Positions 799-28,528 of a stretch of DNA of 64,000 bases are shown in pieces. The stretch is from contig JBLDXI010000002.1 of assembly GCA_047495785.1 (NCBI GenBank), positions 1,054,001 through 1,118,000 on the forward strand. Direction: 5' to 3'. Source of the DNA: Lepidodermella squamata. Lineage: Eukaryota > Animalia > Gastrotricha. Position numbers and translations under genes: made by a program. The notes beneath the pieces are model-generated. The model saw nothing but the letters and a program-made list of their open reading frames with translations. It did no database searches and was not told the origin of the DNA. How positions within the stretch are numbered: the first letter of the stretch is position 1; every line of letters starts with the position of its first letter.

Positions 799-3700
799 GA
801 TTTATGTCCGATTCCCCGAAATAACTTCCCCGAAAACTTGTTGCCCGAAAAGTGCGTCGCCGAAATAATTTTCCCGAAATAACTTCCCCGAAACGATTAG
901 TCGCTGTAGTAGCGACGAGAAAGACGCTTGTTAGGCTCAAGGAATTTCCCCGAAAACACACACATGCATAAACTGCAAGAAGATGAATAAACAAATATTA
1001 GTAGGTATCTAAAATTAATACACAGCTATACAGGTGGTTTCCCCGAAAACACGCGGACGCACACAACCACTTCCGCATGAGCTGTTGGCATAAACAAAGA
1101 GAATCGACATGCATTGACATAAAAAGACGCCCGTCCGAAGGAGGTTAATCCTCTTAGGTCTTAGGCTGGACGCACTGATTAAAACCGGAAAGAACACGGG
1201 TGCTATATGAAACATGTATTATCACAGCTGCATAGAAAACGCGCGTAAATCAACATCAATGATTGGAGTGCAATTTGACCAGCATTTGCTTTAATAAACT
1301 CTGGAACTTTCAAACTGTAATCAGTAAAATATGCTGACGGCTATAAGATTTCTCCCATTGCAGTCACTTTATATTTATATTTTTTTATTTATTCCAATGT
1401 AAGCTTGGTCCATGATCTGGCTGAACTTCATTTGCTGCTGTTTTCAATTAAATTTCAAATTTCAAATTCATTAAATATTGCGGAATTAAGATGTTAATGT
1501 TTGAATTAGATTCTGACCAGCTACAATAAAAGTCGCTTATGTTATGTCTAAAACAACAAGATCGAAGAGAGTGTCACCCCTGATCAGCCTAACTATGATT
1601 AAAAAGGGGCGCGGAAGACCGAGGAAGACTCAGCCTCAGCCTCAGCCGAATCCTGTCACGCCTCGCTTACCTGGTAATTTAAAAATTCTCGAACTCCTGA
1701 AATGCATTCATGAATTTGTTTGTGAAAGCGCCATCTCAAACCTCAACTCAGGTAAAGCCGCTGAAGGCTAAGAAGCGTGTCGCTCCGGTGACTGTTGACA
1801 GCCTAGTCTCTCTGATTTCGCCCATCGCAGTAGATACTCGACTCGACTCGCCGGACGTCTTGGACTCGCCCCCATCTCTCGAACCGCAATCGCCTCCTCG
1901 GTCGCCGTTGGCTGTCGAAAACAGCATGCCGTCAGGCTCCCCGGATTCACCCCCGCCGGAAAGACCGCCGCTGGGAGCCCCGGAAGCCGATTATCTCCGC
2001 TACGTCGAGGCATTCGAAGAGCACCACCGGCGCAAAGCGAACAAATTTCGTGATCGCAACGCTATTCAGCCTTTCGAGAAAAAAGCGATGCGCAGGTACA
2101 AAGCTGATCTCTCCGCAAATTCAGCTCAACGCGGCTGTACTTTTGAAGACGTTAGTCAACTTTCGATTCAAGCCGAGTCAGAAGCTGTTTTGCGGTACCG
2201 AAATGCACATGGTGGCTGTGTTGTCGTGTACAAGGGTCGTATTTACCTGGAAGATCGTCACGTGATCCGCGGCAAAGAATACATTTATTACCGATGTGCT
2301 AATCATCGTGAATGCAAATGTGCCGCCAAGCTACAACCGCAAGACGTTCCAGCGATGCCGTCGAATTACGAAGGCGGCGTGTGCAAATGGGATAATCGGC
2401 CGATGAAGGTCTATGGGCCTGTTGTCGAGGGTCATGAAGGCGATGATAGCGATGAGCGATTTCACGCGGCGGCTTGCATTTCAAATCACGAGCAAATCGA
2501 GGCTGACTTGGCGGAAGAAGTCCTGCGTAGAGTCAGGGAAATGCCTGATAAGGCACCAAATCAGCTCTATATTGAAGTTCGCAACGGTCTCTCGAGGGAG
2601 GTGCTGAAGCTATTCCGCTCATTCGAGTCGATGAAAAACCGGTTTTACTGCGCGAAGAAGGAGGAATATCCGCCCAACCCCGACGATCTAGATCATCTGC
2701 TGGAAATAGTGAAGTCTGCCGTGCAAAATGACCCTGATGCAATGGAAGCCAACAACTTGGATAGATTTTTGTACGACCACAAAGGGCGAAAATTCCTAAG
2801 AAAATTTTATCATGACGAATCTGGTAAGGCTTACATGATTTTTGCAACCGATGATGGACTGAAGAGAATGGCTCGAACGGCTCGGTGGTTCTTCGACGGC
2901 ACTTTCAAAATGGCTGCGAAGCACTTCATGCAAATGTTCACAATCCACACGATTGAACATGGCGTTTCGGTACCGGCGGCTTACGTGCTAATGACGAATA
3001 AAGATTCTAAGTTATACGAGTCTATGTTCGAAACGTTTTTTTCGATGATAGAAAAGCTTGGCGAGCCCCTTGCCCTAGAAGAGGTGACATGTGACTACGA
3101 GTCGGGTCTCTTACCGGTTCTGCGAGAATTGCGAGGAAAAAACGGCCAGCGACTCCGCATCATCGGCTGCCATTTCCATTTCAGGTAAATTCTTAAATTT
3201 AATTTCTAAATATTTTGAATTTCAAATTTTTTGTTGAAATTTCTAAATTTTATTTTAATAATTTTAATTTTCAAATTTTAGTCTTGAAAATTTTCAAATT
3301 TATCTTTTTCTTTAAAGCCAAGCCATAATTCGAAAACTGGGTGATTTGGGCCTCCTTAAATATTGTCGAAAGCCGAGTCGGGTGGCAACTAACGTGACGC
3401 GGAGTTACGTCCGCCGCTTTCTAGCTCTAGCCTTTCTACCCGTTGAAGATGTTGAAGATGTGCCGAGCGCCATTCATTATCTCATCGAAAAAGCTCCCGC
3501 AATTCAAGCTATGAAGCAATTCTGCACGTATTTCAATTCAACGTGGGGCGAGAAAGGGCTCTTTCCTCCATGTGAGTGGAACGTTCACGACGAAGAAATA
3601 CGAACAAACAATGTCGTGGAAGGTCAGCACTATTATTTCTCGTTTTTCGCTGTAACTTTCGGGCGGCCAAAAATTAAAAAGAACAATAAAAAAGTATAAA

Positions 3701-4873: not shown

Positions 4874-6370
4874 GGACCACTTTCGTGCGGTCCAAGGTTA
4901 ATGCATAATATACATATTTTCCACCTGTCATTATGGTTGCTTATTTTGAGATAAAATTTTTGGCGATGTTGAATATCATGGAAACCAGTCTTAACCATGG
5001 ACCGCAGCTAAAAAACGCATATTGGACCGCAATTTTCACAAAAATGCCATTTTAATGAAATTTGCGGTCCATTCACGTGCGGTCCATCAATTCCAGGTCG
5101 ACTACAATTCGGGGTCAATTGGACTGGGGAGGTTAATCACCCTGAAGGAGTTTCGACATGCAGTCAAATTCGCGGTCAAGAGCGCGAAGAAATGGCGAGT
5201 CGATTGAGAATCCTATGTCGCAGTGACGGAACCAGTATTGGTGTTCCAGTCCTCGAGCTGGTCTCCGCCGATCAACACACCTCTTCCATTACATCATGGC
5301 TGTTGTCGTGGAAGACGGCGCTGATGAATCGCTCTCAGGCAGCCAGATTGCCTCGAGCTCAAGTTACTGACGCTTGTTTTGCAGAGTTACAGGCCGGTTC
5401 GATGGCTTTCAACCGCCTTGATTTGCATCGCTACCTCTGCGCCGTTTACAAATTCATTGTCAATGACAAGATCTTCATACCGCCAGGCTACACGATGCTG
5501 TTTATATGTTTTTCACACTTGATGAAGGATTACGGCATCGCGTTGAAGAAGGCAATCCATGGCATGAAAAAAGACAACAAAGAGCTGAGCCTTCGCCATC
5601 TTGGTGTTCTTCAAAGCCCGCGAATTTTCTCCGATGCTGTGATTATTTTCCGTCTGATCATCCGTGTCCGCTGCAGCCTCCGTCTGAACAAAGTTGCCGT
5701 CGAAGCGAAGAAAGAGCTGGAATCGCGTAAATCAAAACAGAGACTTGATTGCGGAGATTTCTGGCATCGTCGAGAAGACTAGTACCGAACCGGAAGCAAC
5801 TTCTGAGCAGGAAGCAACTTCTGTCGACGACGACGAAAACACGCCTGTCGAATCGGTTTCCTTACAGTCGCTCGACACCTTTCGGCCGGTTTTTCCGCAG
5901 AGTCCGAAATGAAGAACAGTGCTTGCTGGAACGAGTAGACAATTAATCGGGTTTGAAAGATAACCCTGATTACAACCCAGCTGATGTCAACGTTCTCAAC
6001 AACAACCCTATCTTCATGTCAATGTACTGTTGTTGGGGGGGGGGGGGGGCAAGCTACATTTTCGCTACACTGCCTGACAACGCGACGGGTCGTGTTTCCA
6101 ATGCGCCGGTCGAAAGTTGGATGCGAGTGTACAAAGCAGATCTCAACATGAAGAAAACTTTCAGCACACCACCTGCCGTCATCCGACGCGTTAAGCCGGC
6201 TATTTTCGGCCGCATTCGTAAAGATTCGATGCCCAGATTCGTATCCAAATTGCAATGGACACGCGGTAAAAACACGTACTGCAAACTTCCGGAGCTGGCA
6301 AGATCCCGATGGATGGATCGGAAGTCCAATCGCAAGCCTCCGAAGCCTATTTTACTGTCATTACTTAATA

Positions 6371-7866: not shown

Positions 7867-10576
7867 ATGAGTATGATCACAGCAAAAATACTTTTGTGTA
7901 ATTTTAACAGTATAATGAAGCGCAAGAATGAGATCTCGTCGGTTATGAACCGCAGACAGGTAGATGTTGCGTGCTTCAACGAACTGAAAATTAAGAAGGG
8001 TGACACTTATTTCATCCCAAATTACAGAACTCTGGCTCTTGAGCGCACCAGCCACGGAGGAGGCGTCGGTGTAAACCCAGCAACGCATCTAACCGTCGAA
8101 AATTTCGGAAAAAATACTATAGATCGCGTAGAGATAGCTTTTGTCGATATCAGGCTCGGCGACCGTATAATTCGAATCGCGACTGCCTACTGCCCCGCGA
8201 CTGCTGTAAGAGTCGAAACTCTAATGGGACCAAACTGTTACCGCTGCTGCTAAACAATAATCTCGTTATGTTAAGTAAAGGTCAAGTTACTCATCGCTCC
8301 CCGATAGGAGAAGATGATCAGCTGGACGTATTCATATGTTCCAGGGAATTGAAAGACTATTTCTCGACGCCCTACGTCTTGCCGTCTGTTGGTACTGAAC
8401 ACTTACCAGTGGTTATAGAGTACTCAGCCTTATCTTTAACGGGAAAAAGACAGAATTTCTACCCAGAATATCGATATAACTATCGCAACGTAAACTGGAC
8501 GATATTCAAGAGCGGTATGGACGAGATGTGTGAACGCATTTTGTCAAACAAACCGATAAAATTTGAAGATCAGCCCTCCATGGATATGTTTTACAAAGGT
8601 ATCGAAGACATATTTTGTACAACAAGGGACAAGCACATAGCTAGAATACCCGCGGGAAAACTAAAAATTTGTCGAACGACCAAACCGATACTTATTGCCA
8701 CGAAAAATCGAAATAGGCTTCAGCGACTAGCTAAAAAGTATAATTCTCCGTCTCTGAAGAGGGCGTATTACAAATCCCGCGACCAAGTGACCGAAATGTG
8801 GACAAAAGAGACAAACCGGTGGGTATACAAAAAACAAATAAGCGCGCATGGTCACTTCGGAACGGCCCCGCAAATGTTCTGGAGAGCTATGAATTCGGCC
8901 ATGAAAAGAAATGCGTCTACAACTCCTCACGTCATGAAAGACCTGCTGGTCGACGGGCGCTCAATAACCTCTGATGCAGGAAAAGTTGAGGTGATGGGGG
9001 AATTCCTCGAAAATACATTTTCTGAGTGCAATAACTTACAACTAACCGCAGAAGACCGGCTATACCAGGCAGACGCAAAAGCCGCCGCCAGCTTACCTTG
9101 CTTCGAACCTGGAGTCATAAATGAAGAAGCTAGAAGTGTTTTAAATACGGATATGATAAGAAACCACATTCGAGACCTTAAAATGAAAGCCCCAGGCCAC
9201 GACAATGTTCATAACACTTTGCTTAAACAAGCCTCCGACAAAATGATTCAACTTTTGCTCTTTTTATACACAAGCATTTTGATATTCGGTTTTGTACCGT
9301 CAGCTTGGAAAATAGCTGTTGTTATTTTATTACCTAAGCCAGGCAAAGACCATCAATCACCGAAAGGCCACAGGCCCATTTCTCTCCTGCCAACTATAGG
9401 CAAACTATTCGACAAAATCTTGAACCGAATTTTAATGACAACTCTAGAAAAAAACTCCTGGTTTGCCAATTGGCAGTGCGGCTTCCGTTTTTTAAGGGGC
9501 TGCTCAGACCATTTATTCAGGTTAGCTCAAGCTGGAAAAGCAGCCATGCAGCAAGGGAAGGACGTAACCGCCTGTTTTTTAGACGTACAAGCTGCTTTCG
9601 ACAAGGTTCCGCACTTCATTTTACTACTTATAATATCTAATCTACCTATTCCAAATTATCTCAAACGTTACCTCGCCAGCAATCTCAAAGAGCGAAAATT
9701 CATGGTAAGAATTGGTTCTGCGCTAGGTAACGCAAGGCCTATCAGAGCTGGGGTCCCGCAAGGGGCGCCCAGTAGTCCATCTCTTTTTATTATTTTTACC
9801 AATAGTCTTTTTGATAATATTAACCAGCCACTTGTTGAACGCGGAGGGCTGGCTGACGACATTTTACTTTTTACAACGTCCGAACGATCCTCATTTGCTA
9901 AACGACAGGTAAAAGAGAGACTTGAATCCACACTTGACCTTGTGCTCAAATGGTATAACCGACATATGCTTAAACTGAATTCGGATAAAACGCAGGTGAT
10001 CCGCTTCTCTCTAGCGAAAGAGGATAACAGAACGAAACTCGTCTTTGATGGCAATACCCTTCCCTGGCTTACGGAAGTTACCTATCTCGGCGTTATCTTT
10101 GATAAAAAACTCAATTTTAACTCTCATGTCTTAAAGATACAGGACAAAGTCACCTCGCGAATTTCAAGCTTGCGTCGCCTGTGTGGTCCATCAGTTCGAA
10201 TGCCTCCAAACCAGCTCTAACTGTGTTCAAAGCCTACGTCCGCTCTGCCGTGGAGTCCGGCTGCGAAGCCTTTCTCTCAATGAAAGACGACAACATGATA
10301 ACCCTTCAAACCATTCAAAACACGGCCCTGAAGATTTGCCCCGGTAAACCGCGATGGTACGGCACGAAGCAGATTCATCTCGAAGCAGGTGTTCCAATGC
10401 TGAAAGACCAATTAGCTGCAAGAACAGCGAAAGCGATTGCCCGAGCTATAAGAGTTGGCACCGAATGTGGCTTAGAAACTGTCGAGGTCTTACAAAAACC
10501 TCCTGTTACACCCTCACGCCCATCTGTTAAAGCACCACTTGACGTAATTCGAGATTTCATTGTAGACATTGTTTGA
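7867..10576 (+). pseudogene. LINE ORF2 (APE endonuclease + reverse transcriptase), frameshifted
   Basis: ACFNE, GGGV, TEHLPV (APE); KAPGHD, RPISLL, FLDVQAAFDKV, GVPQG, LADD, YLGVIFD (RT); split across three ORFs with breaks near 8225 and 10210. Confidence 0.9.
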
Positions 10577-12414: not shown

Positions 12415-12798
12415 ACTTGGACTAGCAACTAACTATACTAAATGACTCAAAAAACACTTAAAACTAAAAACTAACCGCGGAAACCAATAAAGACAGCCTC
12501 TAGGTCGCCCTCGTAACATCGAAATCTCGTTATGCCATGATAATAGCCCGGAATTGATGGACCGCACGTGAATGGACCGCAAATTTCATTAAAATGGCAT
12601 TTTTGTGAAAATTGCGGTCCAATATGCGTTTTTTAGCTGCGGTCCATGGTTAAGACTGGTTTCCATGATATTCAACATCGCCAAAAATTTTATCTCAAAA
12701 TAAGCAACCATAATGACAGGTGGAAAATATGTATATTATGCATTAACCTTGGACCGCACGAAAGTGGTCCGCTAACTTCACGCGGGTTTAGGAAGTTT

Positions 12799-15094
12799 TT
12801 AATAATCTCCTTCTTCGGGATCAGCTCGTGGCTTAGAAGACTTCTTAGCAGGTTTTGATTTCATCACGGGCTCTTCCTCAGGCTGCTGAACCATTTCCAT
12901 CAGCTTCCGGCTAACTGTAGCTCGCGACACTGGCTTGAAGGATTGGTCATTCATTTTGAAAATCTTCTCGCGAGCCAGCGTGAATTTGGAGATGACGGAT
13001 TCGAGCTCGAGACGTCGAGCAATGCTTGCCTCATCCTCCATGAATAGACGGTCCCTTTCATCCGCGTCACACAGTTTGAGGAGGCGGGGCTTCAACGTGT
13101 CACAAACTGCTTCGATCATGTGCCGGGTTACAGATTTCACCATAGCTGAGACCATGGGATCACGAACTCGATCCATATACCGAACAGCAAGATTGCCTGG
13201 ATTGGAAATTTCGTAAGGTTGTTGGAAAATGTTTTCAAAAAAACTTACGGTATGATGCGACCATCGCTGGGGTAATACGGCTAATGCTGTCCTTCATCAA
13301 AGAATTCTCCTCGAAATCATCGCCAGCATCTTGAACAGTTTCGACCTCGTTTTCACTACTAGAGTCGTCAATATCACTTTTATCCTGGTCCTTGTCATCG
13401 CCTGCTTCACCAGCGACGGGTCGGGGTTTTGTCAACGCTGCAGGTCGTGCTGGCTTTAAAAATGGATCTAGAGCTCGGCTTGCAGATGGGGATATATCTG
13501 CTTTGTTATCGATGACATCGTCTTCCTTGCGCAATTCGTCAAGATTGATGTGCGCCTGTTGCACCTCTGCCAGTTCTTTCGTGGCCTTCAAAGCCTTGGC
13601 CTGCTCCTCGTCCAAAATATCCCGAGTCATTTTCATAATCTCGCCAGACAGAACCGGCAGACGGTGCATGTTTTGCTCCAGTTCCTCGTGAAGATCGATG
13701 CATTGGCTAACTTCGTTCAGCATAGACTGGTGAACAGCCCGAACACACTCACGGCCGACTAATACGAAATTTTCCAGCATGAGTTGGACAATCCGTTTGC
13801 AGGCTTCGTCATTGAACGTTGCTTCGCCTACAACACCACTAGCGTTGGCGATGATTGTTTGAATCTGTTCTTCAGTCAACTCGAGGGCAAGTTGTCGAAT
13901 CCTGGCTGGGAGGGCGAAATTGAAGAGCTCACGAATCGCCGTTGAAGCAGTGAATCTCTTCGCGACTTTCACTTGATTACCGCTAGTTCGAGCTGTTTTG
14001 CCTGTAATGGCGTATTGGTACGCCTCAGCGTAATCAAGGGTCACATCTACAGCTGAGTGAAGGTAGTCTGCAACATCACGAGTTTCGCCCAACTCTTCTC
14101 GCTCCTCTCGGTAGGAAGACAGGCGTATATTTATTTCTTGGATGGTTTTCGGGGTTGCCTTAGCGATTTCCGTGCGCAGAATCTTCACCAGAGTTTCAGC
14201 AAGGACCTTAGATCCGTGTTTCTTGGCCAAAGCTGGGTTGTGACCAAGAGCTTTTTTCAGCTTAGTTTCCTCAGCAGACCTTGCTTTGTCGAGTGGTACT
14301 GCTTCGTCCAAGTCTTCCTGCGATCGATTGATCACCCCGACAATGCCACGTTTCGCAACCAAATTCTTCTCCTGCAGCATCTTTTCCAGAGTTTTCGGGT
14401 CGACCTTATCCAGGTGAGTCAGAACCATGAGAGTCCTTTCGCCGGTGGGGTCGACACTTCGAGCGATTTGAATGGCTTTATTGGCCTTGTAGTCATCATG
14501 GGCCGCATGGACTAGCACGAGTATCGTCTCCGGGCTGCTGATATACTTCTTCCACATCTTTTCGACGAAGCTCGACACATCGCGATGAGAAGCGTCGTCG
14601 AAAATCAGACCGGGCAGATCGACGAAGGCTAGCGGCACTGTGTTTCTGATGTGAAGCTCCATTGAGATTGGATTATCGGACAAGCCTCCCTTCGTTGCTG
14701 GCGCTAATTGGGCTGATATTTCCATGAGCCTTTCAGCAGTTTCAACTGCTGGAACTTGCTCGGCCTGTTTAGAGGCGACCCCTCGCTTATCGACCACTGA
14801 ATACTCGATTTTCGCCCAGTCTTGATCGCTGAATGGGCCTTTTTGCTTGCCGCGTTCGAAGATTTTGATTTCCAACGGACTTTTCGTAGAGGTTTCTCTT
14901 CCCTTGGGCAGAATTTCGAGGCCGATGAGAGTTTCGACGGTTGAAGATTTGCCATGGCTCTGCAGACCAATGAAGACGAGTCGAGGTGTTTTGATGGCCT
15001 TGAAATCCTTCTGGAAATGGTCGTCGCCCAGCTCGTCCAATATGGCTTGGGCTTCTGTGAAGGCACTCAAACTTGCGCTACTAAGTTGAAGCAT
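12799..15094 (-). CDS. Dynamin-superfamily GTPase (DRP/Mx/Vps1-type, no PH domain), copy A, 747 aa
   Basis: Exons 15094-13249 and 13196-12799 (52-bp GT-AG intron); G1 GLQSHGKSS, G2 LPKG..T, G3 DLPG, G4 THLD, INRS; middle domain; GED-like SYRNLAVRYMD. Confidence 0.92.
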
Positions 15095-16868: not shown

Positions 16869-18450
16869 GGACCACTTTCGCGCGGTCCAAGGTTAATGCA
16901 AAAGCATAATATACATATTTTCCACCTGTCATTATGGTTGCTTATTTTGAGATAAAAGTTTTGGCGATGTTGAATATCATGGAAACCAGTCTTAACCATG
17001 GACCGCAGCTAAAAAACGCATATTGGACCGCAATTTTCACAAAAATGCCATTTTTATGAAATTTGCGGTCCATTCACGTGCGGTCCATCAATTCCGGGCT
17101 ATCATCGTTAATAAACAACTCGAACCGTTGCCAAAAAGAGTCTTGTGCTTAGCACGAGCTCTCTGATGACGTGTCAAGAATACCGTATGACGTAACAGCG
17201 GTGTTTATCTGGAAAACACATTCGTCGCACGTGGAAACTCGCTTTCGCGTGTTTGATGCGAATGTTGATGCGAATGTTCGGTCGTCAACTTTTCATTCAG
17301 TTTAATTTGTTTTCATGAATTTCAACGAAAAATTGATAACTCAAGTTCTCGAGGGTCGTCTCATACCCCGGGGGCAGGGCTGGAGGCGCGTCAACAGCAT
17401 CTTCGGTCAGGCCATAACTCGAAGTTATGGAATGGATGCCAACACGGAGCGCGCTCAGCATGACCTGTATAACTGGGCCAACGCCAATGCTGCCCACTTG
17501 ATAGAGCAGCCTTTGTCAACGACTCCGAGTTCCACTGGCTCTGGCAAGCGAAGGCGACGTCGCAAGAAGAGCAAGAAGGCCCAGAGCAGCCTGACTTTCT
17601 TCCTGTTGAAGACGGAATTGGATCGCTTCGGACCACGCATGCGGGTAGCATATTTAACGTAGTAATTATTGTGCATATTTAAAACGATATCTCTAGGGGC
17701 AAGCTAGGAAACGCCTGAAGCTTGACCCTGGTTGGGTTAAGGTGGTACGTGATGCATTCCACACGGTGGATCACCGATGCAATTGGGCGAAAGTCTCACA
17801 TCAAATCAACACCACAGGAACCTTGTCCATCACCACGAACTGTCCATTCGACAACTGTCGCAAGTTTTCACTGACGTGAGTAATTCGACTTTTCAAGCTA
17901 CTAATTGTTTAGTAAAAATTGTTTCTCATAGGTGCGAGATGGCAAAGGTTGACAACCAAGGTCGACTACAATTCGGGGTCAATTGGACTGGGGAGGTTAA
18001 TCACCCTGAAGGAGTTTCGACATGCAGTCAAATTCGCGGTCAAGAGCGCGAAGAAATGGCGAGTCGATTGAGAATCCTATGTCGCAGTGACGGAACCAGT
18101 ATTGGTGTTCCAGTCCTCGAGCTGGTCTCCGCCGATCAACACACCTCTTCCATTACATCATGGCTGTTGTCGTGGAAGACGGCGCTGATGAATCGCTCTC
18201 AGACAGCCAGATTGCCTCGAGCTCAAGTTACCGACGCTTGTTTTGCAGAGTTACAGGCCGGTTCGATGGCTTTCAACCGCCTTGGTTTGCATCGCTACCT
18301 CTGCGCCGTTTACAAATTCATTGTCAATGACAAGATCTTCATACCGCCAGGCTACACGATGCTGTTTATATGTTTTTCACACTTGATGAAGGATTACGGC
18401 ATCGCGTTGAAGAAGGCAATCCATGGCATGAAAAAAGACGACAAAGAGCT

Positions 18451-20801: not shown

Positions 20802-22981
20802 GAAGAAAGAGCTGGAATCGCGTTGGGATCGCGTAAATCAAAACAGAGACTTGATTGCGGAGATTTCTGGCATCGTCGAGAAGACTAGTACCGAACCGGA
20901 AGCAACTTCTGAGCAGGAAGCAACTTCTGTCGACGACGACGAAAACACGCCTGTCGAATCGGTTTCCTTACAGTCGCTCGACACCTTTCGGCCGGTTTTT
21001 CCGCAGAGTCCGAAATGAAGAACAGTGCTTGCTGGAACGAGTTGACAATTAATCGGGTTTGAAAGATAACCCTGATTACAACCCAGCTGTTGTCAACGTT
21101 CTCAACAACAACCCTATCTTCATGTCAATGTACTGTTGTTGGGGGGGGGGGGGAGGGGGGGGGGGGGGCAAGCTACATTTTCGCTACACTGCCTGACAAC
21201 GCGACGGGTCGTGTTTCCAATGCGCCGGTCGAAAGTTGGATGCGAGTGTACAAAGCAGATCTCAACATGAAGAAAACTTTCAGCACACCACCTGCCGTCA
21301 TCCGACGCGTTAAGCCGGCTATTTTCGGCCGCATTCGTAAAGATTCGATGCCCAGATTCGTATCCAAATTGCAATGGACACGCGGTAAAAACACGTACTG
21401 CAAACTTCCGGAGCTGGCAAGATCCCGATGGAAGGATCGGAAGTCCAATCGCAAGCCTCCGAAATATTGTCCAAGGCTATCACCTCGGACCAAATCTCGA
21501 CTTGACGGTGAGAATTCCTCTTCGTTAATTTTTCCCCTTCTTAATGTTGAAATATCACTTCAGAGGCGAAGCGAAACGCTGAGGTGAACCGCAAAACTGC
21601 AACACCTGTCGAGTCCGATTTGGCTAGCATTGATGCCATTTCCCCCTCCGCTCAGCTGAGAAATCAATCGCCTGATGATGAACTTCCGTTATCTGACCTT
21701 ATCAATAAGCCACGCAGAAGGCAGCAGTCAAAACGAGGTAAAGACATTTCTGTGGCAATATCTTTTCGCTCTGATGAAGGTTTCCTTTTCAAATGTAGTA
21801 GTGCAAAGTTCATCATCGGCAACGCCAACCACCGACTCATCTGTTTCCTTTCAATCGTCCAAACAGAGCAAGAAAAAGCGCCGGAAATCTAAGCCGAAGC
21901 CTCAAAGAGAAAACCGCGCAGAATCGAGAATGGGTTCGGCAACACCAGAACCGAGTTTGCCTGCCGTCATTCCCCTCGGTATGGTTCTTTTCCACCCGGT
22001 CAATCACGAGTGGCAGCTGTCAACAGCCAAGATGTTGGGCGGGCAGGTTACGGTTCAAATCAAGCCTGAGCTAGCAGCGATCTGCATTATGTCGCCGAGA
22101 AGCAGTCCTCCGCTGCGAACTGTTTCCATGCTCGGCGATGGCGCCTGCTTCTTCAGGATGCTGTCTTACTGGGTTTATGGTACTCAGGACCATCATTTGA
22201 TGGTAAGGATTTTAATTTGATTACACTTACTTTGTAATTTGAAATTGTATCTGATAGATAAGGAAGAAAATTTGCAAATTCATTGAGGAGAATGGAGACC
22301 TCTTGCCTACCTGCGCAATACCACAACAACGGGAGCAACTACGTCAAGGCTACGCGTATGCGCTTCAAGTCTACATTCGCCGAATTCGTCGAGATATATG
22401 CTGCAGCGCTATTCCTGAATACCACCATTTACGTATTCGGTAGGGAGCAAGAAAATTCGGTCGAATTCGAGTGGCGCCGGTTTGCTGCACAGGGCGGCAT
22501 GGAGAGCCAGCCAATGAACAACAACGAGCGCGCCATCTACTGCGTCATCAACAATGCGCACTTCGACGTTGTACTCTCAATCCGTAACGTGGACTAGACT
22601 TGGACTAGCAACTAACTATACTAAATGACTCAAAAAACACTTAAAACTAAAAACTAACCGCGGAAACCAATAAAGACAGCCTCTAGGTCGCCCTCGTAAC
22701 ATCGAAATCTCGTTATGCCATGATAATAGCCCGGAATTGATGGACCGCACGTGAATGGACCGCAAATTTCATTAAAATGGCATTTTTGTGAAAATTGCGG
22801 CCCAATATGCGTTTTTTAGCTGCGGTCCATGGTTAAGACTGGTTTCCATGATATTCAACATCGCCAAAAATTTTATCTCAAAATAAGCAACCATAATGAC
22901 AGGTGGAAAATATGTATATTATGCATTAACCTTGGACCGCACGAAAGTGGTCCGCTAACTTCACGCGGGTTTAGGAAGTTT

Positions 22982-25900
22982 TTAATAATCTCCTTCTTCG
23001 GGATCAGCTCGTGGCTTAGGAGACTTCTTCGCAGGTTTTGGTTTCACAACGGACTCTTCCTCAGGCTGTGGAACCATTTCCATCAGCTTCCGGCTAACTG
23101 TAGCTCGCGACACTGGCTTGAAGGATTGGTCATTCATTTTGAAAATCTTCTCGCGAGCCAGCGTGAATTTGGAGATGACGGATTCGAGCTCGAGACGTCG
23201 AGCAATGCTTGCCTCATCCTCCATGAATAGACGGTCCCTTTCATCCGCGTCACACAGTTTGAGGAGGCGGGGCTTCAACGTGTCACAAACTGCTTCGATC
23301 ATGTGCCGGGTTACAGATTTCACCATAGCTGAGACCATGGGATCACGAACTCGATCCATATACCGAACAGCAAGATTGCCTGGATTGGAAATTTCGTAAG
23401 GTTGTTGGAAAATGTTTTCAAAAAAACTTACGGTATGATGCGACCATCGCTGGGGTAATACGGCTAATGCTGTCCTTCATCAAAGAATTCTCCTCGAAAT
23501 CATCGCCAGCATCTTGAACAGTTTCGACCTCGTTTTCACTACTAGAGTCGTCAATATCACTTTTATCCTGGTCCTTGTCATCGCCTGCTTCACCAGCGAC
23601 GGGTCGGGGTTTTGTCAACGCTGCAGGTCGTGCTGGCTTTAAAAATGGATCTAGAGCTCGGCTTGCAGATGGGGATATATCTGCTTTGTTATCGATGACA
23701 TCGTCTTCCTTGCGCAATTCGTCAAGATTGATGTGCGCCTGTTGCACCTCTGCCAGTTCTTTCGTGGCCTTCAAAGCCTTGGCCTGCTCCTCGTCCAAAA
23801 TATCCCGAGTCATTTTCATAATCTCGCCAGACAGAACCGGCAGACGGTGCATGTTTTGCTCCAGTTCCTCGTGAAGATCGATGCATTGGCTAACTTCGTT
23901 CAGCATAGACTGGTGAACAGCCCGAACACACTCACGGCCGACTAATACGAAATTTTCCAGCATGAGTTGGACAATCCGTTTGCAGGCTTCGTCTTTGAAC
24001 GTTGCTTCGCCTACATCACCACTAGCGTTGGCGATGATTGTTTGAATCTGTTCTTCAGTCAACTCGAGGGCAAGTTGTCGAATCCTGGCTGGGAGGGCGA
24101 AATTGAAGAGCTCACGAATCGCCGTTGAAGCAGTGAATCTCTTCGCGACTTTCACTTGATTACCGCTAGTTCGAGCTGTTTTGCCTGTAATGGCGTATTG
24201 GTACGCCTCAGCGTAATCAAGGGTCACATCTACAGCTGAGTGAAGGTAGTCAGCAACATCACGAGTTTCGCCCAACTCTTCTCGCTCCGCGAAGGATTGG
24301 TCATTCATTTTGAAAATCTTCTCGCGAGCCAGCGTGAATTTGGAGATGACGGATTCGAGCTCGAGACGTCGAGCAATGCTTGCCTCATCCTCCATGAATA
24401 GACGGTCCCTTTTATCCGCGTCACACAGTTTGAGGAGGCGGGGCTTCAACGTGTCACAAACTGCTTCGATCATGTGCCGGGTTACAGATTTCACCATAGC
24501 TGAGACCATGGGATCACGAACTCGATCCATATACCGAACAGCAAGATTGCCTGGATTGGAAATTTCGTAAGGTTGTTGGAAAACGTTTTCAAAAAAACTT
24601 ACGGTATGATGCGACCATCGCTGGGGTAATACGGCTAATGCTGTCCTTCATCAAAGAATTCTCCTCGAAATCATCGCCAGCATCTTGAACAGTTTCGACC
24701 TCGTTTTCACTACTAGAGTCGTCAATATCACTTTTATCCTGGTCCTTGTCATCGCCTGCTTCACCAGCGACGGGTCGGGGTTTTGTCAACGCTGCAGGTC
24801 GTGTTGGCTTTAAAAATGGATTTAGAGCTCGGCTTGCAGATGGGGATATATCTGCTTTGTTATCGATGACATCGTCTTCCTTGCGCAATTCGTCAAGATT
24901 GATGTGCGCCTGTTGCACCTCTGCCAGTTCTTTCGTGGCCTTCAAAGCCTTGGCCTGCTCCTCGTCCAAAATATCCCGAGTCATTTTCATAATCTCGCCA
25001 GACAGAACCGGCAGACGGTGCATGTTTTGCTCCAGTTCCTCGTGAAGATCGATGCATTGGCTAACTTCGTTCAGCATAGACTGGTGAACAGCCCGAACAC
25101 ACTCACGGCCGACTAATACGAAATTTTCCAGCATGAGTTGGACAATCCGTTTGCAGGCTTCGTCTTTGAACGTTGCTTCGCCTACATCACCACTAGCGTT
25201 GGCGATGATTGTTTGAATCTGTTCTTCAGTCAACTCGAGGGCAAGTTGTCGAATCCTGGCTGGGAGGGCGTTATTGAAGAGCTCACGAATCGCCGTTGAA
25301 GCAGTGAATCTCTTCGCGACTTTCACTTGATTACCACTGGTTCGAGCTGTTTTGCCAGTTATCGCGTATTGGTAGGCCTCGGCGTAATCTAGGGTAACAT
25401 CTACAGCTGAGTGAAGGTAGTCTGCAACATCACGAGTTTCGCCCAACTCTTCTCGCTCCTCTCGGTAGGAAGACAGGCGTATATTTATTTCTTGGATGGT
25501 TTTCGGGGTTGCCTTAGCGATTTCCGTGCGCAGAATCTTCACCAGAGTTTCAGCAAGGACCTTAGATCCGTGTTTCTTGGCCAAAGCTGGGTTGTGACCA
25601 AGAGCTTTTTTCAGCTTAGTTTCCTCAGCAGACCTTGCTTTGTCGAGTGGTACTGCTTCGTCCAAGTCTTCCTGCGATCGATTGATCACCCCGACAATGC
25701 CACGTTTCGCAACCAAATTCTTCTCCTGCAGCATCTTTTCCAGAGTTTTCGGGTCGACCTTATCCAGGTGAGTCAGAACCATGAGAGTCCTTTCGCCGGT
25801 GGGGTCGACACTTCGAGCGATTTGAATGGCTTTATTGGCCTTGTAGTCATCATGGGCCGCATGGACTAGCACGATTATCGTCTCCGGGCTGCTGATATAC

Positions 25901-26448
25901 TTCTTCCACATCTTTTCGACGAAGCTCGACACATCGCGATGAGAAGCGTCGTCGAAAATCAGACCGGGCAGATCGACGAAGGCTAGCGGCACTGTGTTTC
26001 TGATGTGAAGCTCCATTGAGATTGGATTATCGGACAAGCCTCCCTTCGTTGCTGGCGCTAATTGGGCTGATATTTCCATGAGCCTTTCAGCAGTTTCAAC
26101 TGCTGGAACTTGCTCGGCCTGTTTAGAGGCGACCCCTCGCTTATCGACCACTGAATACTCGATTTTCGCCCAGTCTTGATCGCTGAATGGGCCTTTTTGC
26201 TTGCCGCGTTCGAAGATTTTGATTTCCAACGGACTTTTCGTAGAGGTTTCTCTTCCCTTGGGCAGAATTTCGAGGCCGATGAGAGTTTCGACGGTTGAAG
26301 ATTTGCCATGGCTCTGCAGACCAATGAAGACGAGTCGAGGTGTTTTGATTGCCTTGAAATCCTTCTGGAAATGGTCGTCGCCCAGCTCGTCCAATAGGGC
26401 TTGGGCTTCAGTGAAAGCACTCAAACTTGCGCTACTGAGTTGAAGCAT
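22982..26448 (-). CDS. Dynamin-superfamily GTPase with in-frame duplicated middle+GED region, 1120 aa
   Basis: Exons 26448-24603, 24550-23432, 23379-22982 total 3363 nt with no stop; 1171-bp internal duplication, junction KMNDQSF-A-EREELG near 24289. Confidence 0.85.
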
Positions 26449-27568
26449 TGTGGTGAATTATGTTGATATTTCGGCAGACTAAGAGCGTCGATGTTAAGCG
26501 ATGGTACATAGAACGGCCTTATATAGGCGCATCCTTATCCGAAATCGTGGTGGTGAAACATCTTACAAAAGGACGTTAATCGCCGTATAGCCTTGACGTT
26601 GTGCTCACCTTGATATTGTCATCATACGCAAAAACACGTAATAATGAGCAGCTTTTATGAAAACTTACTATGGTCACTATAAATATATCTAATATAATTC
26701 GTCATTAGTCATATTATATTATTAATCATATGCACGTTTTTTAGCCTCTTCATTCTTTGTTGTAAATTCCCCCAGGCCTTGTGAAAAAAGAGCAGCTGGA
26801 AGATCGGCGTCTTCTATGGAGAATGAAAATAAAGCGGAAAATTCAATGAAAACTGGCTCTCACAATATAATGAATCTTCGACAAAATTATTCCTGTTCTT
26901 CCTCAAAGTCACCTCCAATATATCATAGAGCTTAAAATCATAAATCTCAAATGTCTCGTTCACAGAATTAGTAAGCCTTGGGCGAAAAAGGCGAATGCCA
27001 ATTCTCCCGGTAAGGTTCATAAGTCCTTCAAAAGTCAAAATGAAGCTGTGGTATTAATGAAAAAGCAATAAAAGTTTTTTGGTAAGATTTCCTTGAGGTG
27101 GTCATCAAATTCCCGAGCTTCGTCGCTTCGTTCCGGAAGTGGCCGAAAGTGCAAATCAATTGAGCCCTGTCTCCAATTATTGTCCTTTGATTCAAACTTA
27201 GCGTATTGTTCGCAAGAGCTAGGAGCGTTTCATATTGTTTGATACAGTTAGTACTTCGTCATAATATTTAAGAATGCCACAATGCGAGCAAAATTTGTAT
27301 AATTTCCAAACCTCTGCTGATCTAGGCAAGGATAGCACAAGGCTTTTAATTTCCAACTTCATTGCGAAAAAAGTCTGTGAAACATCTGCCCTCGATTTTA
27401 CTGAATTTACTAGCGAAACTGGAAGCTGAAAATTGTAGAGAAGTGTGGACTAAATGTTACAGATATGGCAACAAGAATGCAAAGGAAATTTTCTTCGACT
27501 TTAATATTGGCAAATAGTTTGCAGACAACAATAACAAAAACAACAATTAATGGTCAAGCAATACAGTT

Positions 27569-28528
27569 TTACTTCTCGATAGATGTTGCTTCACCAAGGC
27601 AGATTTCGAGTTGGCAACCAGTTTTATCAGCGTCGTATTTCACAAGGTGGCCAATGATCGCTTCATTGCCTTTCTCCAACGCCAACTGCATCGCAGTTTT
27701 ACCATCGCCATTCGCATTATTAACGCCAGAATTGTCAGTTTCCAGCAGCTTCAACACACCGAATTCACGTCCAGCCAGCACAGCTCGATGCAGGGCATTT
27801 TCGCCGCGACTGTTGGCCGTGTAGATTGTCGCATTCATCTCGGCCAGGTACATCGTAATCAGCTCACTGCCGCTATCAACGGCGTACATCAAGGCAGTGT
27901 TGCCGTCTTTATCGGCCACGTTAATGTCGGCGCCAGCTTCGATCAACTTGATGGCTATCTCGATGTTGTTCGACGCAACGGCGGCGATTAGGGGAGTAAA
28001 ACCGTTTGCGGCGTCTTTCTGGTTTAGATCAACTTTTTGATTGATGAAATTCACAACAGCTTCCACATCACCTTCCTTCGCCGCTTGAATGATTGATTTC
28101 TACGAGGAAAATTGTAATAAACTTTATCAATTATTAAGTTTGTAACCTGTGAACAGCTCATCACCAGGGGAGGATCCCAAGATCCGTTGCTTCCGCAAAT
28201 GCTGACCGGGGATTTGTCGCCAAGCGATGGGCAGTAGATTTGCAGTGCGTAGCCTTCCGTCAGTGTTTTCATACGCGCTGGAATGAAAGGATCAGTTTTG
28301 GTTGATGTTCGCGATTTCAGCGTAAATTCGGCCGCTGGTGGCACTTGTGGGATTTTACACCGAACCGTAATTCTGTCGCTTTCGATCTTATCGGTAATAG
28401 TCTGATTGAATAATTCCGAGTTGAATTGATTGATACATGTTATAGGGAATTCTTACGTCTAGCAATTCGCTCTTCTTCGACTGGCACGAGGCTAAAGAGG
28501 CAAAAATGATGGCGAGCTTCAACAACAT
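27569..28528 (-). CDS. Secreted sushi/CCP-like + ankyrin-repeat protein (intact parent of the truncated copies; 3' end uncertain)
   Basis: Signal-like MLLKLAIIFASLASC; CKIP...IYC...ICGSNGSWDPPLVMSC; ankyrin repeats GFTPLIAA, GNTALMYA, GENALHRA, GKTAMQLA. Confidence 0.78.

Follow-up and report, generated by a model that had tools for sequence, protein, structure and literature searches.

We analyzed a 64,000-nucleotide stretch of the genome assembly of the gastrotrich Lepidodermella squamata (hereafter the window; G000:C2:1054001-1118000) and found a dynamin-like gene whose stalk and GTPase effector domain (GED) are encoded twice behind a single GTPase domain. The gene, copy B, belongs to a tandem array of three units (A, B, and C), and among four close paralogs and two distant ones it is the only copy carrying the doubled stalk. 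The second stalk and GED module sits within the same spliced frame as the first. We consider it somewhat probable that copy B is a real and young structural variant, tolerated through redundancy, and that its product, if made, perturbs the stalk polymers of its paralogs rather than performing a selected new activity. Coordinates are positions within the window, which belongs to an assembly with 151 contigs and 121.2 Mb in total, and the features are collected in Table 1.

Table 1. Features of copy B and of the surrounding dynamin array
Feature	Position	Strand	Description
Copy B of the dynamin-like gene	22982-26448	-	ATG at 26448, stop at 22982-22984; spliced model of 1120 residues, ~125 kDa
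Exon 1	24603-26448	-	GTPase domain, bundle signaling element (BSE) helix 2, first stalk (helices 1-3), disordered acidic insert; ends in a split codon, phase 1
Intron 1	24551-24602	-	52 nt, GTAAGT...CAG; in-frame TGA if retained
Exon 2	23432-24550	-	1119 nt = 373 codons; first GED, junction, second stalk, second insert
Intron 2	23380-23431	-	copy of intron 1 with 1 substitution (23413)
Exon 3	22982-23379	-	second GED, 44-45-residue Pro/Lys-rich tail, stop
Upstream repeat unit	24291-25459	-	residues 331-702; C/D-like (ancestral) states at nine sites in 25336-25396 and at 25271-25272
Junction filler GC	24289-24290		matches neither breakpoint flank; no microhomology; makes codon GCG (Ala703)
Downstream repeat unit	23120-24288	-	residues 704-1075; copy-A-like states at 24165-24225 and 24100-24101
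Copy A, single stalk	12802-15094	-	747 residues; reference for the unduplicated state
Copy C, single stalk	G000:C2:1051722-1053885		adjoins the left edge of the window
MULE transposase and FLYWCH zinc-finger open reading frame	1710-3188	+	between array units C and A
Reverse-transcriptase-domain open reading frame	8268-10220	+	between array units C and A
224-bp dispersed repeat	4874-5097(+), 12547-12770(-), 16869-17095(+), 22730-22953(-)		inverted pairs flanking dynamin copies

Self-comparison of positions 21000-28500 revealed a single direct repeat, whose units start 1171 nt apart. Compared base by base, its two units align over 1169 nt with 16 mismatches (98.6% identity), and the homology ends sharply on both sides; a repeat of such length and identity cannot have arisen by chance. 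At the protein level, residues 331-703 and 704-1076 differ at N393F, N543D, T549A, and K662E and at the junction alanine. With the intron removed, the spacing leaves 1171 - 52 = 1119 nt, or 373 codons per unit. Without the filler, the unit would hold 1117 coding nucleotides and be out of frame, so that the two nucleotides GC, by bringing it to 1119, keep the frame. Because the unit includes an intron of its own and comes to 373 codons once this is spliced out, the frame of copy B stays open: the spliced model is 3363 nt long, with 1120 codons and a sole stop at the end. The intron itself is supported as real by a 62%-identical relative from another species (L006, Logan run ERR10802333), which has a 63-nt GT..AG intron at the identical codon and phase.

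Searches and structure models were made exon by exon, and the joined spliced models were used for frame counts and local comparisons. In exon 1, Pfam matched Dynamin_N (E 9.3e-26) and Dynamin_M (3e-32); in exon 2, GED (4e-05, 24.1 bits) was followed by Dynamin_M at positions 83-273 (1.6e-12); and in exon 3, GED was matched again (3e-06, 27.7 bits), both GED scores lying above the Pfam cut-off of 21.4 bits. A search of NCBIfam gave nothing useful. An earlier note, made from the letters of this DNA, had proposed the layout GTPase-middle-GED-middle-GED and a 1171-bp repeat with a 52-bp intron adding 373 codons in a frame that needs the GC filler; the Pfam domains of the three exons and the open 1120-codon frame agree with the former, and the arithmetic was rechecked and holds for the latter. 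Dynamin_N was matched once in copy B, in exon 1 only, which leaves a single GTPase head, and we rejected on this ground a two-headed dynamin.

By sequence and predicted fold, the gene is a divergent Drp1/Vps1-type dynamin without a pleckstrin homology (PH) domain. The nearest solved structures by sequence were Drp1 chains (E 1.5e-39), with Vps1, dynamin-1, and Mx ranking lower. For exon 1, an AlphaFold model built from 107 aligned sequences reached a mean predicted local distance difference test (pLDDT) score of 82.7. In this model, the GTPase domain is followed by a long BSE helix (residues 295-335), a loop (336-340), and the stalk helices (341 to ~514). The top Foldseek match of the model was nucleotide-free Drp1 (4BEJ; E 1e-23, TM scores of 0.64/0.71). 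No PH domain was matched by Pfam, and its usual location is occupied in the exon 1 model by an acidic disordered segment, residues 526-576, with pLDDT below 50. For exon 2, the AlphaFold2 model was based on a shallow alignment of 11 rows (mean pLDDT 52.8), and we used its secondary structure while ignoring the packing; a sequence search of the Protein Data Bank with exon 2 gave no match.

The predicted gene shares with Drp1/DNM1L, Dnm1, and Vps1 the order of GTPase domain, BSE, four-helix stalk, disordered insert in place of the PH domain, and GED. Drp1 is its best match by sequence and by fold, yet the identity is merely ~25-29%, and copy B further differs from these proteins in its G4 motif (THLD rather than TKxD), its 44-45-residue Pro/Lys-rich tail, and the second module of stalk, insert, and GED. 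Mx proteins, to which the earlier note also referred, likewise have no PH domain and use the stalk for assembly, and tandem paralogs are common among them. They are a weaker match than Drp1 (E 1e-17 to 1e-21 for Mx1 and Mx2 chains in the structure sequence search, against 1e-39), on which basis membership of the Mx family was rejected, and no evidence here ties the family of copy B to immunity.

Among the GTPase motifs of copy B, G1 reads GLQSHGKS at residue 43 and G3 reads DLPG at residue 159. The unusual G4, THLD (window 25771-25782, residues 226-229), is found in all four close copies A-D, while the aligned sequences from other genomes have TKxD at this position in 105 out of 105 cases, including the 62%-identical one. 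Judged from the motif, nucleotide binding may be altered in the paralog group A-D.

We then considered where the breakpoints fall relative to the fold. In the exon 1 model, the repeat starts at residue 331, five residues short of where BSE helix 2 ends and just before the hinge loop 336-340. It ends at F702, ~4 residues past the last GED helix in the low-confidence exon 2 model, and the Pfam GED match stops at model position 89 of 92, ~5 to 8 residues before F702. The unit thus consists of the end of BSE helix 2, the hinge, stalk helices 1-3, the disordered insert, stalk helix 4, and BSE helix 3, and the product runs in the order head, BSE, unit 331-703, unit 704-1076, and 44-45-residue tail. 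The earlier claim that the breakpoints lie at domain edges is borne out by the models of exons 1 and 2 and by the end of the Pfam GED match, with the qualification that the second Pfam middle domain is the stalk part only (Dynamin_M 83-273). The in-frame outcome by itself has a prior of 1/3; for a random event that is in frame and also bounded on both sides by the edges of a single complete module, we would put the probability at well under 1%, a figure judged post hoc and on a case picked from a very large scan. It hints weakly at tolerance or selection and demonstrates neither.

The single-stalk state is seen throughout the closest relatives. Besides the array members A and C, a fourth close paralog, copy D, lies 0.5 Mb away with 88% DNA identity and has a single stalk, as does L006, the 62%-identical relative of 768 residues. 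Pairwise ratios of nonsynonymous to synonymous substitution rates (dN/dS) were 0.10-0.15 in the older pairs (A, B, and C vs. D; C vs. A or B), which shows that purifying selection acts on the single-stalk genes and that they are functional. The two distant paralogs (L027, G000:C7:1942501-1948500; L028, G000:C32:399501-405000) are 28-47% identical in protein sequence over the matched stretches; the former encodes stalk, insert, and GED in one unbroken frame, without the intron common to A-D and L006.

Outside the assembly, a word-based protein search with exon 1 found four relatives, the best at 62% identity and none from L. squamata. An exhaustive HMMER search extended this to 3699 relatives at E <= 1e-3, all but the 62% one at 24-40% identity. 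The doubled stalk and GED layout, proposed earlier to be unknown among dynamins, was indeed found in none of the best 150 of these 3699 relatives (1.84 billion representatives searched), a sample of the nearest relatives and not of the whole superfamily. A literature search on dynamin tandem duplication, stalk, and GED returned nothing relevant. The only protein longer than 1000 residues among the 150 best relatives (P0005, 1418 residues, from another genome) contains two Dynamin_N, four Dynamin_M, and two GED stretches and, unlike copy B, consists of two whole dynamin units; it may be a real two-headed dynamin of the eukaryotic type or a fused gene call.

The doubled-stalk layout is unusual, and its nearest known precedent is DynA of Bacillus subtilis, a two-headed dynamin in which the entire unit is duplicated within one polypeptide. 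In both DynA and P0005 the GTPase domain is doubled as well, whereas copy B doubles the stalk and GED module behind a single head. The stalk is the element that builds dimers, filaments, and rings in dynamins, Drp1, and Mx. A natural protein with two stalks and one head would, if true, offer an existing system for testing how the geometry of polymers depends on stalk valency, and copy B would be a gene caught as a whole oligomerization module was added by a single non-homologous event. In-frame partial tandem and exon duplications likewise have a non-homologous junction, duplicate an intron-bearing segment, and preserve the frame. These form a mutation class and not a protein family, and copy B is distinctive among them in adding a complete oligomerization module.

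The differences between the two units inform about their history. Nine of the 16 fall in a 61-bp stretch (25336-25396 vs. 24165-24225), all at third codon positions, and together with 25271-25272 a total of 11 lie in short stretches where the upstream unit has the state of copy C or D and the downstream unit that of copy A. The derived form of the 61-bp stretch is present in copy A (~13982-14042) and in the downstream unit of B only, and absent from the upstream unit, C, and D. With its nine synonymous changes, it resembles a tract acquired by gene conversion from a diverged, functional donor absent from the assembly, in which no further locus carries the stretch. Both units have a B-specific base (25187/24016) and are without an A-specific base (23994 in the downstream unit), and the downstream unit continues into a tail that differs from copy A at eight positions. 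On these site patterns, the two units are mosaics of paralog variants, separated by at least one gene-conversion or recombination event, and the arrangement is thus not brand new. Elsewhere in the gene, the differences between copies B and A are also clustered, with seven in ~150 bp at the 5' end (26350-26502) and eight in 50 bp of the tail (23020-23070); several are shared with copy D, which again points to mosaic conversion in the family.

A non-homologous junction with a 2-nt filler is a signature of end joining or template switching and not of unequal homologous crossover. As the junction is without homology, we rejected both an unequal homologous crossover and a haplotype bubble set in tandem; a chimera of copies A and B was rejected by the B-specific base at 24016, the missing A-specific base at 23994, and the B-specific tail. 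Of the duplication put forward in the earlier note, the repeat and the junction stand, but the event need not have been intragenic: because the units carry different paralog haplotypes, a deletion fusing two neighboring array copies fits equally well. Judged from the sequence patterns, an intragenic tandem duplication or a deletion-fusion of array neighbors could give the layout, with the deletion, in the latter case, reaching from where one GED ends to where the next stalk starts.

Under the explanation that we favor, one non-homologous join, with its 2-nt filler and no microhomology, would have put a second module behind the first, either as a 1171-bp intragenic tandem duplication or through a ~9-kb deletion fusing two adjacent array paralogs. 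The unit would have brought its own intron and 373 spliced codons, and the open frame would specify a protein of 125 kDa in which a single GTPase head is followed by two stalk modules. The variant would be present in the animal's DNA, and the doubled copy B would be tolerated with three intact and near-identical paralogs, A, C, and D, supplying the normal function. If the protein is made, its extra stalk would assemble together with those of the paralogs, at one head per two stalks, and perturb their polymers. An altered ring geometry, cross-linked filaments, or a dominant-negative action, all raised in the earlier note, are speculative. A young variant that is merely tolerated would be of smaller value, as a clean case of module duplication in a fast-amplifying array. 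Two points weigh against this explanation. An early amplified chimera between alleles is possible, given the probable source of the assembly in DNA amplified by multiple displacement amplification (MDA) and a heterozygosity of ~3%; and the improbable junction, in frame and at module edges, could be a weak hint at selection for a working protein.

The first point concerns a junction formed in vitro, as could happen if phi29 switched templates between alleles early in MDA, and carried into the hifiasm primary contig; the animal itself would then have a normal copy B with a single stalk. The assembly behind the window was probably built from MDA-amplified DNA: the published L. squamata assembly has 122 Mb in 157 contigs and was made with hifiasm from high-fidelity (HiFi) reads of such DNA (PMC11660948). 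Its coverage was 83x on the 147-Mb version preceding decontamination, and the heterozygosity of 2.99% could cover the 1.4% divergence between the units; ~3.1% of the reads were suspected chimeras and retained, the screening being for inter-contig chimeras only (PMC11660948). The form of the junction fits such an origin poorly, however. In a survey of MDA chimeras, 85% were inverted, direct joins less than 10 kb apart made up 11 of 475, and ~91% of the short-range direct joins showed complementarity of 2 bp or more (PMC1855051), while the copy B junction is in direct orientation, spans 1.17 kb, and has zero microhomology, placing it in the rarest class and without the feature that nearly always accompanies that class. 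A lone chimeric read should also be out-voted at 83x, and the B-specific base in both units (25187/24016) means that the downstream unit is not copy A. No other two-copy tandem duplications or palindromes were found in the 264 kb made up of the window and 200 kb sampled from the same contig, a sample too small for a rate. A protein search with a 200-residue piece spanning the junction gave no match and is uninformative, as records of the species' own genome possibly lie outside the search set. We consider an amplification artefact unlikely; if the junction were one, the case would be of smaller value, as a caution on assemblies from MDA-amplified DNA.

A real junction could still be silent at the protein level, if exon 2 is mostly skipped (donor 24602 to acceptor 23380) and copy B gives an ordinary dynamin. 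Exon 2 owes its existence solely to the repeat, and skipping it keeps the frame: exons 1 and 3 joined directly form an open frame of 747 residues (~83 kDa), the exon 1 part of which is 98.5% identical to copy A, and with near-identical introns either acceptor fits the first donor. With introns of ~50 nt, however, the donor and acceptor of an intron are usually recognized as a pair, so that the nearest acceptor would be used. Because the 52-nt introns of copy B are probably defined by such pairing, exon 2 should be included in the mRNA, and we regard prevalent skipping as distinctly improbable. As for transcription, the 5' flanks of copies B and A are ~98% identical over ~770 bp, and copy B is therefore probably transcribed if copy A is.

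The weakest alternative is that an expressed tandem-stalk dynamin has been kept by selection, as a one-headed pseudo-dimer in a single chain or as a subunit that tunes the geometry or stability of the A, C, and D polymers by capping, branching, or inhibition; the preserved frame and module-edge breakpoints, the promoter-side flank shared with copy A, the at least one conversion event since the units formed, and the absence of the layout from the 150 nearest relatives all speak for it, but with the units differing at four residues, too few to show constraint, the layout found in one of four copies in one species, and an intact reading frame expected by default at such a young age, we find a selected function very doubtful.

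The array that holds copy B is transposon-rich and recently amplified. One of the copies of the 224-bp dispersed repeat lies directly downstream of the copy B stop (22730-22953), and others are found beside A and C. The repeat looks like a miniature inverted-repeat transposable element; it contains internal GGACCGC-type palindromes and is present on at least six other contigs.

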